A stretch of DNA of 64,000 bases from positions 262,260,001-262,324,000 of the forward strand of contig NW_027362771.1 in the NCBI RefSeq assembly GCF_046119375.1. The letters are read 5' to 3'. This DNA comes from Phyllobates terribilis (Eukaryota). The stretch's first letter is position 1. Each line of letters begins with the position of its first letter. Shown here piece by piece: positions 17,670-32,900 of this stretch. The notes beneath the pieces are model-generated. The model was not told the DNA's origin and ran no database searches. It worked only from the letters and a program-made list of their open reading frames with translations. The position numbers and the translations under genes were made by a program.

Positions 17670-17770
17670 AACGGTCACGTGGGCAGCTTCCCGCCCAGAT
17701 TATTGGCCGGCCCTAGTGCTCGGCGGCAGGGTGGGGCTGGCGGAGATGCCGCACTGTTACCATGGAGCTG
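17670..17770 (+). promoter_or_regulatory. Candidate CCDC146 promoter (E-box, GC-box, inverted CCAAT, RFX X-box-like site)
   Basis: CACGTG 17676-81, CCCGCCC 17690-96, ATTGG 17702-06 and GTTACCATGGAGC 17756-68 in a CpG-rich patch just before a consensus splice donor. Assignment to CCDC146 is inference. Confidence 0.45.
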
Positions 17771-17901
17771 GACGCTAGCTTTTCACTGAGGGCCTGTAAC
17801 GTGATAAAGTCGCTGCGTCGCTCCCAGTGACTCCAGCTGTGAGGCATGTAAGGACCCCCCGAGCCGAATCCCCCAATACTTCACACCTGTGCCTGGAAGA
17901 G
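17760..17901 (+). other. Putative non-coding exon 1 of CCDC146; template of the ~142-bp block repeated 9 times
   Basis: Ends GGAAGAG|GTGAGA (donor at 17902). Near-identical copies start at 19633, 20901, 23450, 24576, 25413, 26539, 27376 and 31484. No transcript evidence available. Confidence 0.4.
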
Positions 17902-29900: not shown

Positions 29901-32900
29901 CCTCCCTCACTGAGAGAAGTCACAGCCCCTCCCTCACTGAGAGAAGTCACAGCCCCTCCCTCACTGAGAGAAGTCACAGCCCCTCCCTCACTGAGAGAAG
30001 TCACAGCCCCTCCCTCACTGAGAGAAGTCACAGCCCCTCCCTCACTGAGAGAAGTCACAGCCCCTCCCTCACTGAGAGAAGTCACAGCCCCTCCCTCACT
30101 GAGAGAAGTCACAGCCCCTCCCTCACTGAGAGAAGTCACAGCCCCTCCCTCACTGAGAGAAGTCACAGCCCCTCCCTCACTGAGAGAAGTCACAGCCCCT
30201 CCCTCACTGAGAGAAGTCACAGCCCCTCCCTCACTGAGAGAAGTCACAGCCCCTCCCTCACTGAGAGAAGTCACAGCCCCTCCCTCACTGAGAGAAGTCA
30301 CAGCCCCTCCCTCACTGAGAGAAGTCACAGCCCCTCCCTCACTGAGAGAAGTCACAGCCCCTCCCTCACTGAGAGAAGTCACAGCCCCTCCCTCACTGAG
30401 AGAAGTCACAGCCCCTCCCTCACTGAGAGAAGTCACAGCCCCTCCCTCACTGAGAGAAGTCACAGCCCCTCCCTCACTGAGAGAAGTCACAGCCCCTCCC
30501 TCACTGAGAGAAGTCACAGCCCCTCCCTCACTGAGAGAAGTCACAGCCCCTCCCTCACTGAGAGAAGTCACAGCCCCTCCCTCACTGAGAGAAGTCACAG
30601 CCCCTCCCTCACTGAGAGAAGTCACAGCCCCTCCCTCACTGAGAGAAGTCACAGCCCCTCCCTCACTGAGAGAAGTCACAGCCCCTCCCTCACTGAGAGC
30701 AATCACAGCCCCTCACCGAGAGAAATCACAGCCCCTCACCGAGAGAAATCACAGCCCATCACCGAGAGCAATCACAGCCCCTCACCTAGAGAAATCACAG
30801 CCCCTCACCGAGAGAAGTCACAGCCCCTCACCTAGAGAAATCACAGCCCCTCACCTAGAGAAATCACAGCCCCTCACCTAGAGAAATCACAGCCCCTCAC
30901 TGAGAGAAGTCACAGCCCCTCACTGAGAGAAGTCACAGCCCCTCACTCACTGAGAGAAATCACAGCCCCTTACTCACTGAGAGAAATCACAGCCCCTCAC
31001 TCATTGAGAGAAGTCACAGCCCCTCACTGAGAGCAATCACAGCCCCTCACTGAGAGCAATCACAGCCCCTCACTGAGAGCAATCACAGCCCCTCACTGAG
31101 AGCAATCACAGCCCCTCACTGAGAGCAATCACAGCCCCTCACCGAGAGAAATCACAGCCCCTCACCGAGAGAAATCACAGCCCCTCACCGAGAGAAATCA
31201 CAGCCCCTCACCGAGAGAAATCACAGCCCCTCACCGAGAGCAATCACAGCCCCTCACCTAGAGAAATCATAGCCCCTCACAGAGAGAAGTCACAGCCTCT
31301 CACCTAGAGAAGTCACAGCCCCTCACTGAGAGAAGTCACAGCCCCTGACTGAGAGAAATCACAGCCCCTCACTCACTGAGAGAAATCACAGCCCCTCACT
31401 CACTGAGAGAAATCACAGCCCCTCACTCACTGAGAGCAATCACAGCCCCTCACTGAGAGCAATCACAGCCCCTCAACTGAGAGCCATGGAGCTTGACGCT
31501 TAGCTTTTCACTGAGGGCCTGTAACGTGATAATGTCACTCTGTCTCTCCCCGTGACTCCAGCTGTGAGGCATGTAAGGACCCCCGAGCCGAATCCCCCAA
31601 TACTTCACACCTGTGCCTGGAAGAGGTGAGAGCAATCGCAGCCCCTCACTCACTGAGAGAAATCGCAGCCCCTCACTCACTGAGAGAAATCGCAGCCCCT
31701 CCCTCACTGAGAGAAGTCACAGCCCCTCCCTCACTGAGAGAAGTCACAGCCCCTCCCTCACTGAGAGAAGTCACAGCCCCTCACTCACTGAGAGAAGTCA
31801 CAGCCCCTCACTGAGAGAAGTCACAGCCCCTCACTGAGAGAAGTCACAGCCCCTCACTCACTGAGAGAAGTCACAGCCCCTCACTCACTGAGAGAAGTCA
31901 CAGCCCCTCACTCACTGAGAGAAGTCACAGCCCCTCACTCACTGAGAGAAGTCACAGCCCCTCACTCACTGAGAGAAGTCACAGCCCCTCACTCACTGAG
32001 AGAAGTCACAGCCCCTCACTCACTGAGAGAAGTCACAGCCCCTCACTCACTGAGAGAAGTCACAGCCCCTCACTCACTGAGAGAAGTCACAGCCCCTCAC
32101 TCACTGAGAGAAGTCACAGCCCCTCACTGAGAGAAGTCACAGCCCCTCACTGAGAGAAGTCACAGCCCCTCACTGAGAGAAATCACAGCCCCTCACTCAC
32201 TGAGAAAAATAACAGCCCCTCACTCACTGAGAAAAATAACAGCCCCTCACTCACTGAGAAAAATAACAGCCCCTCACTCACTGAGAAAAATAACAGCCCC
32301 TCACTCACTGAGAGCAATCACAGCCCCTCACTGAGAGCAATCACAGCCCCTCACCTAGAGAAATCACAGCCCCTCACCTAGAGCAATCACAGCCCCTCAC
32401 CTAGAGCAATCACAGCCCCTCACCGAGAGCAATAACAGCCCCTCACCTAGAGAAATCACAGCCCCTCACCGAGAGAAATCACAGCCCCTCACCGAGAGAA
32501 ATCACAGCCCCTCGCTGAGAGAAGTCACAGCCCCTCACTGAGAGAAGTCACAGCCCCTCACTGAGAGAAATCACAGCCCCTCGCTGAGAGAAGTCACAGC
32601 CCCTCACTGAGAGAAGTCACAGCCCCTCACTGAGAGAAATCACAGCCCCTCACTGAGAGAAATCACAGCCCCTCACCGAGAGAAATCACAGCCCCTCACT
32701 CACTGAGAGCCATTACAACCCCTCACTGAGAGCAATCACAGCCCCTCACTGAGAGCAATCACAGCCCCTCACTGAGAGCAATCACAGCCCCTCACTGAGA
32801 GCAATCACAGCCCCTCACTGAGAGCAATCACAGCCCCTCACTGAGAGCAATCACAGCCCCTCACTGAGAGCAATCACAGCCCCTCACCTAGAGAAATCAC

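Follow-up and report, generated by a model that had tools for sequence, protein, structure and literature searches.

How does the putative first exon of a gene, splice donor included, come to be present nine times within a single tandem array, and are the additional copies used? The question is raised by a 64-kb stretch of contig NW_027362771.1 of the frog Phyllobates terribilis (hereafter the window, with positions counted from its first letter), in which a block of 142 bp, putatively the non-coding exon 1 of CCDC146, recurs inside a minisatellite that begins at the exon 1–intron 1 boundary. The answer that we favour, with a probability of about two in three, is that this minisatellite, which is absent from Eleutherodactylus coqui, captured exon 1 into a higher-order repeat, and that the eight inner copies are silent passengers. 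The extra copies would then most likely be a harmless by-product of unequal recombination.

A 15-mer from the start of the block was found nine times on the plus strand (eight exact occurrences and one with a single mismatch), against a chance expectation of 0.11. The blocks start at 17760, 19633, 20901, 23450, 24576, 25413, 26539, 27376 and 31484; they measure 142 bp, or 141 bp in the copies at 24576 and 26539, and all nine end in GGAAGAG/GTGAGAGCAATC (the slash marks the exon–intron boundary), with the G of the donor at 17902, 19775, 21043, 23592, 24717, 25555, 26680, 27518 and 31626, respectively. An initial annotation of this DNA, made from the letters alone, had given all nine starts exactly and had placed a consensus donor at the end of each block, as is indeed the case; eight of its donor positions are also correct, while the fifth, 24716, is off by one. 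Copy 1 (17760–17901, plus strand, as for all the copies) is followed by what we regard as the authentic 5′ splice site, GAG/GTGAGA (17899–17907). The inner blocks are 93.7–97.9% identical to copy 1 (BLAST). Copy 2 (19633–19774) has a haplotype in common with copies 4, 6 and 8, copy 3 (20901–21042) is the nearest to copy 1 (97.9%), copy 8 occupies 27376–27517, and copy 9 (31484–31625), with five private changes within the block, is the most diverged. Copies 4 (23450) and 5 (24576) lie in a 1963-bp unit (23450–25412) which is repeated base for base, with copies 6 (25413) and 7 (26539), at 25413–27375.

The inner blocks are embedded in a minisatellite of 16.6 kb (17902–34484, plus strand) made of some 600–650 units of 23 or 27 bp, of the form TGAGAG-AAGTCACAGCCCCTCAC with or without TCAC, the 27-bp unit being the 23-bp unit with an extra TCAC. 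Tandem Repeats Finder reported it as a single array (17921–34484, period 27, about 650 copies), and, with TGAGAG as the cutting point, 195 of the units measured 23 bp and 303 measured 27 bp, with some compound units besides. The feature had originally been delimited as 17756–31630: the start fits, but the end is too short, as the array continues to 34484. The plus strand of the array is rich in C and A (GC skew about -0.3, AT skew about +0.3), and CpG is nearly absent from it (observed/expected ratio 0.07). The first unit begins at 17903, i.e. at the T of the donor GT, and takes in the TGAGAG of the donor. The 27-bp monomers themselves contain no donor, because a C precedes their TGAGAG (CAC/TGAGAG, which reads CTGAGAG) and there is therefore no GT; GAG/GTGAGA is found in the nine block copies only. 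Neither block nor monomer has a match elsewhere in the window, on either strand.

The longest stretch between two blocks (27518–31483, plus strand, from the monomer map) includes a recent local expansion, in which a single 27-bp variant (CCCCTCCCTCAC; 100 units in the whole array) is repeated about 95 times without a break. The complement of this variant reads GGGAGGGG, so that the template strand carries a pair of G-runs in every unit; these are possible G-quadruplex or MAZ-like sites. The G-run variant coincides with the largest and most uniform expansion of the array.

Only copy 1 is preceded by promoter-like sequence, as had been noticed at the outset. The 160 bp on its 5′ side occur once in the window (BLAST returned only the match to itself), while copies 2–9 start directly after ...CTCACTGAGAG and lack all the sequence 5′ of CCATGG. 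The core promoter (17640–17759, plus strand) has a GC content of 0.6 and a CpG observed/expected ratio of about 0.6–0.66, and includes GTCACGTG, an E-box, at 17674–17681, the GC-box-like GGGGCTGGCGGAG, and GTTA, the left half of a site that the initial annotation had described as X-box-like. The RFX X-box consensus is GTNRCC N0-3 RGYAAC. The frog sequence GTTACC-AT-GGAGCT matches its left half at 6/6 positions and its right half at 2/6, and E. coqui has GTTACT-AT-GGAGTT; on this comparison the site would be a half-site at best, and the original description does not hold for its right half.

Whether the block is an original part of the gene or a later arrival was examined using a single outgroup species, E. 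coqui, in the form of its gene locus with 10-kb flanks (L001, 21.5 kb). Only four islands are conserved between the window and L001, in the same order and on the same strands. The first is the first coding exon of a head-to-head FAM185A-like (DUF4097) neighbour (8972–9549, minus strand; 81% over 588 bp, L001 739–1314), which serves as a synteny anchor and corresponds to a PF13349 gene called in L001. The second comprises promoter and block (window 17723–17844, 76% identity over 123 bp by BLAST; L001 ~5690–5910), the third is exon 2 of CCDC146 (80% identity), and the fourth is an intronic piece of 130 bp (window 49154–49283 versus L001 14390–14514, 75%). In the second island, the promoter aligns to L001 ~5690–5787 and copy 1 to L001 ~5788–5902; the E-box GTCACGTG, the GC-box, GTTAC[CT]ATGGAG, most of the block and the donor AG/GTGAGAG are conserved, the E. 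coqui donor being AAG/GTGAGA. The E. coqui locus thus keeps promoter and donor around one block copy, 4.1 kb upstream of exon 2. No second copy of the block was found within the 21.5 kb of L001, nor was there a tandem array at the block or in intron 1, or any match to the monomer within five mismatches; intron 1 measures 4087 nt in E. coqui versus 23087 nt in P. terribilis.

Because a single syntenic copy with promoter and donor is present in E. coqui, the block appears to be an old, promoter-proximal, donor-bearing exon of this locus and not a piece of a transposon; and because the same locus has one block and no satellite, the satellite and the extra copies appear to have arisen after the split from the Eleutherodactylus lineage. 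The window is admittedly rich in transposons, with Tc1-like copies and a Ty3-like retroelement, and a dispersed repeat or transposon fragment carrying its own minisatellite might have come to lie 5′ of CCDC146 exon 2 by accident. However, block, promoter and donor are single-copy in E. coqui at the syntenic site, flanked by the same pair of genes; neither the 64-kb window nor the 21.5-kb L001 contains a further copy outside this locus; and Rfam gave no matches, which makes a dispersed origin scarcely credible.

The identity of the gene was established indirectly, through its second exon (40989–41170, plus strand), which has an ATG at 41000 followed by 57 codons, is in phase 0, and ends in ...SPAFQCLDE/GTAAGG. 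The encoded peptide is 81% identical to a hypothetical protein of 94 residues from E. coqui (P0001). A word-indexed protein search with the exon-2 open reading frame (ORF) retrieved this E. coqui model alone, and then the query alone, and a profile built from the two sequences retrieved 31 matches among 1.8 billion representatives. Nearly all of these are short ORFs on genomic contigs of various vertebrates which end in ...SPAFQCLDE and then read through into the intron. One protein, P0006 from Albula (337 residues), has the SPAFQCLDE motif followed by a coiled coil; with a 'coiled-coil domain-containing protein 146-like' protein of Salmo salar it shares 46% identity (E 8e-59), and two further proteins so named match it. 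Pfam, a PDB sequence search and the ESM Atlas returned nothing specific for P0006. Exon 3 is absent from the window and from L001, as judged by motif and tblastn searches with the CCDC146-like protein, which found exon 2 only; for neither of the two possible exon-2 ORFs of the window did an exact look-up retrieve a contig, and all 31 profile matches run into intron sequence at their end, which marks them as genomic, none being a complementary DNA. By this indirect chain through CCDC146-like proteins, we accept that the exon at 40989–41170 belongs to CCDC146, a centriole- and microtubule-associated protein that sperm flagella need (PMC10942651).

In the mouse, an epitope tag was inserted immediately behind the Ccdc146 start codon with a guide targeting exon 2 (PMC10942651), and exon 1 of the mouse gene is therefore non-coding. 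The frog block is on the same strand as the ATG-bearing exon 2 and upstream of it. The proposal, already made in the initial annotation, that the block is exon 1 of CCDC146 has thus been strengthened by its strand, by its position 5′ of exon 2, by the conservation of promoter and donor at the E. coqui locus, and by the location of the mouse start codon in exon 2: the block behaves as a putative non-coding first exon of the gene. The E. coqui gene model GDO78_005740 (94 residues; L001 10001–11559) is a truncated CCDC146 model, whose first 57 residues are exon 2 and whose remainder looks spurious; it omits the true first exon (L001 ~5788–5902).

How the array began can be approached from the E. 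coqui intron, which is single-copy at this point. Its first 27 nt align in register with one monomer, with 20/25 identities and one 2-nt gap, a score equalled by 88 of 10458 L001 windows. The suggestion that the satellite was seeded at the donor is borne out by this alignment, and the descent of the satellite unit from the bases just after the donor is supported to that extent. In all likelihood, the ancestral locus had one promoter and a non-coding exon 1 with a short upstream ORF (uORF) encoding MELDA and a stop; its donor was GTGAGAG and the intron measured some 4 kb. The first ~25 nt of this intron, from the T of GT, then became the 23/27-bp tandem unit and expanded.

The capture of the exon can be followed by lettering and mapping the monomer variants, which makes a higher-order repeat visible. 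The left junction TGAGAG/CCATGG is identical in 8/8 inner copies, and one junction common to eight copies points to a single founding event, in all likelihood the tandem duplication of the interval between CCATGG (17760) and a TGAGAG some 1.87 kb downstream. The seven stretches before blocks 2–8 all end in an identical string of units (…FFFCBE) followed by TGAGAG, and 7/9 of the stretches after the blocks open with an AGCACC-variant unit, other variants following copies 8 and 9. Microhomology at the founding junction amounts to 1 nt at most. A junction at CACTG, mediated by microhomology, was considered and rejected, as the actual junction lies after AGAG with an overlap of no more than 1 nt. 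Equally rejected was a retroposed origin of the copies: since each of them keeps its donor with donor-adjacent intron units behind it, copying must have taken place at the DNA level. One non-homologous tandem duplication thus very probably joined the TGAGAG of a monomer to CCATGG, copying exon 1 without its promoter and with about 1.7 kb of the proximal array.

The subsequent growth is explained well by unequal crossing-over, as had been proposed. Block haplotypes and monomer strings sort together, in the groups 1+3, 2+4+6 and 5+7, and these families of units are interleaved along the array; the blocks are 93.7–100% alike and share one junction, and there is one perfect pair of 1963 bp (23450–25412 and 25413–27375), the newest event, all of which characterizes a higher-order repeat. 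The distal I and J monomer variants (~33.3–34.5 kb) never became part of the large unit. Unequal crossing-over between large units very probably gave the eight inner copies, and slippage of monomers kept resizing the gaps, the inner copies now being spaced 837–4108 bp apart.

It should be noted that adjacent units of 1963 bp with 100% identity, in a 16-kb array of 23/27-bp units of a kind that is hard to assemble, are also what might be expected if copy number and spacing were in part an artefact of assembly and the true locus had fewer or differently arranged blocks. We consider this quite unlikely, since the window contains no N and five block haplotypes can be told apart (copy 1; copy 3; copy 9; copies 2, 4, 6 and 8; copies 5 and 7), each with matching monomer flanks, which indicates at least five real copies, or else two haplotypes wrongly merged.

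The differences among blocks can be polarized with E. coqui as the outgroup. Copy 1 has three private changes, including the loss of one T, and has in common with copy 3 two further derived bases, the A and G at alignment columns 50 and 54. Copies 2–9 and E. coqui read GACGCTTAGC, which gives a uORF encoding MELDA and a stop, also encoded in E. coqui; in copy 1 the private 1-nt deletion leads to a uORF of 22 codons. The two readings of the uORF had been correctly described beforehand, but the event had been given the wrong direction, as a 1-nt insertion in the other copies: the extra T is ancestral and it is copy 1 that lost it. Between copy 1 and the main inner haplotype there are differences at 8/142 positions, which implies that the first duplication is not very recent. 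Decay of CpG in the inner copies was also considered as a sign of methylation and was discarded, as the blocks have 5–8 CpG each with no clear trend, and the outgroup leaves the polarity ambiguous.

Are the inner donors used? A donor matrix, approximate and drawn up from general knowledge, was applied to the 859 GT sites of intron 1, and the nine GAG/GTGAGA sites ranked 2nd to 10th. The top-scoring site is a perfect consensus donor, CAG/GTAAGT (36623–36631), which ends a stop-free stretch of 86 codons (36369–36626); it shows no conservation with E. coqui and may be either a chance site or the donor of an alternative leader exon.

The initial annotation had foreseen an array of competing donors giving variable 5′ untranslated regions. 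In its strongest form, this would mean that the inner copies are spliced in as cassette 5′-untranslated exons, recognized by exon definition from a weak acceptor at or near the left junction and a strong donor, or that inner donors close exon 1 at alternative points. In either case the leaders would vary, and MELDA uORFs present more than once would tune the translation of CCDC146. All nine donors are indeed identical and high-scoring; an AG is present exactly at each left junction, with a CAG 27 nt upstream after CTCAC motifs resembling branch points; and each copy has an upstream ATG in the strong context ACCATGG or GCCATGG, with the MELDA uORF conserved in E. coqui. G is, however, the least favoured base at position -3 of an acceptor, and the AG at the left edge of the inner copies is a GAG, behind a tract that is C-rich, not U-rich, and only 57% pyrimidine. 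Nor does the invariance of the donors speak for selection: the ~14 variable columns in 142 nt predict about 0.9 changes in the 9 nt of the donor, close to the zero observed across nine copies, and selective maintenance was rejected on this basis. Finally, in human F7, where donors are likewise repeated, the first one is favoured and those downstream are silent (PMC1557585). The inner copies being promoter-less and their acceptor poor, the notion of competing donors finds no support here, and we regard the use of the inner copies as unlikely.

A different kind of use would be as extra promoters or start sites, making the locus an array of alternative first exons like those of Snrpn (U exons), protocadherin or UGT1A. 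Each copy has a donor able to join exon 2, and the nine Snrpn U exons spliced into exon 2 are a precedent (PMC3248558); yet the ~100 bp of promoter conserved with E. coqui, with its E-box and GC-box, are missing from all the inner copies, which are preceded by satellite, and additional promoters are accordingly highly improbable.

We therefore return to inner copies carried along as silent passengers. Transcription would start at copy 1 only and the cap-proximal donor at 17902 would be joined to exon 2, while the eight inner copies would leave with the 23-kb intron as silent pseudo-exons. Their silence is suggested by the lack of a promoter, by the poor GAG acceptor, by the position of their donors downstream of an identical cap-proximal donor, and by the F7 precedent. 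We infer that the array does not serve regulation but is a structural feature that is tolerated and probably varies in length.

There is one further relation between exon and satellite. Read as its reverse complement, the satellite core (CAGCCCCTCAC...GTCACAGC) corresponds to conserved sequence of exon 1 (window 17783–17845; L001 ~5850–5880). The inverted near-copy of the monomer that had been reported within the block is real: it matches at 15/18 positions, a value reached by 2/500 dinucleotide shuffles. In exon 1 of E. coqui, which has no satellite, the inverted match exceeds one monomer period and is reached by 0/500 shuffles. The predicted duplex between exon-1 RNA and two monomers has an energy of -35.9 kcal/mol versus -21.9 ± 3.9 for shuffled exons. 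The fold of exon 1 with the start of the intron is no more stable than those of shuffled sequences in either species (z -0.55 and +1.11), and a conserved hairpin is accordingly not claimed; Rfam detected no family in 16000–42000. On the strength of these predictions, one could imagine a functionally integrated array: exon 1 and intron 1 would ancestrally have shared a pairing element, of which the intronic arm was later amplified some 600 times. This element, along with the eight additional strong donors able to bind U1 that lie within 14 kb of the promoter, would influence which donor is chosen, promoter-proximal splicing or the transcription of a gene that sperm flagella need; we hold this to be very unlikely.

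Several points weigh against a silent, donor-born array, and should be considered together. The nine donors are identical and strong, and some use of them is possible. It is by analogy that donor 17902 is taken to be used and the others to be silent, and the pseudo-sites of F7 are tens of bases apart versus kilobases in the frog, so that the scanning argument may not transfer. The identification of CCDC146 hinges on P0006, a single gene model from a fish in which the motif exon is continuous with the coiled coil. A simple birth from the start of the intron does not account for the match, in reverse complement, between the monomer core and an exon-1 motif. Lastly, the outgroup comparison involves one species alone.

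The window holds a number of other features. Directly after the array, intron 1 contains a second, unrelated minisatellite (35110–36339), with a 31-bp unit in about 40 copies, each with a weak donor-like site, CTG/GTATG[CT]. A 37/74-bp tandem repeat (9557–9832) lies just 5′ of the FAM185A-like first coding exon, on its promoter or 5′-untranslated side. Three relics of Tc1/mariner-like transposases were found at 3337–4432, 39135–39842 and 54196–55401, one of them within intron 1, and intron 2 contains a Ty3/Gypsy-like retroelement (44327–48031) with long protease, reverse-transcriptase and integrase frames; compared with E. coqui, much of the lengthening of the introns is due to these elements. 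The conserved island at 49154–49283, also in intron 2, has one plus-strand frame that is open and alike in both species (IKGAI..F..RTW.I.LPY.GS), with no resemblance to CCDC146; the island could be either a conserved element without coding function or an exon that has escaped annotation.

The mechanisms called upon here (slippage, one non-homologous duplication and unequal crossing-over) are ordinary ones, a regulatory role being unsupported, and individuals probably differ in the length of the array. In practical terms, the locus offers spliced alignments nine equivalent matches to exon 1, of which annotators should be warned. If the inner copies are silent, the locus would be a natural example of a minisatellite born at a donor that swept a whole exon into a higher-order repeat, and would show how large a load of duplicated splice signals an intron can bear, here eight strong donors of identical sequence separated by kilobases.

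In the general model, unequal crossing-over gives rise to the higher-order repeats of satellite and minisatellite arrays. The frog array resembles them in its multi-monomer unit with one fixed junction, in its interleaved families, in its perfect newest duplicate, and in that its large units are more alike than neighbouring monomers; it differs from them in that its unit includes unique genic sequence, namely a complete first exon with its splice donor. The U1–U9 exons of mouse Snrpn are non-coding leader exons joining a common exon 2 (PMC3248558). They too are leader-exon copies each with a donor able to join exon 2, but they lie upstream of exon 1 and have promoters of their own, whereas the frog copies are inside intron 1 and promoter-less.

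The system most similar to the frog locus is intron 7 (IVS7) of human F7, where a 37-bp minisatellite repeats 5′ splice sites that are functional but silent, the upstream-most being chosen (Borensztajn et al. 2006, PMC1557585). In both cases, the array starts at an exon–intron boundary, its first unit overlaps the authentic 5′ splice site, and identical donors follow downstream in the intron. In F7, however, each 37-bp monomer spans the boundary and has a donor, whereas the 23/27-bp frog monomer has none, and the frog donor recurs only by way of the whole 142-bp exon, captured in a unit of kilobase scale. The frog copies are, moreover, 0.8–4.1 kb apart instead of 37 bp, and the exon concerned is a putative non-coding first exon. 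The frog locus would thus extend the situation of F7 IVS7 from tens of bases to kilobases, and would provide a natural test of the rule that the first donor wins.

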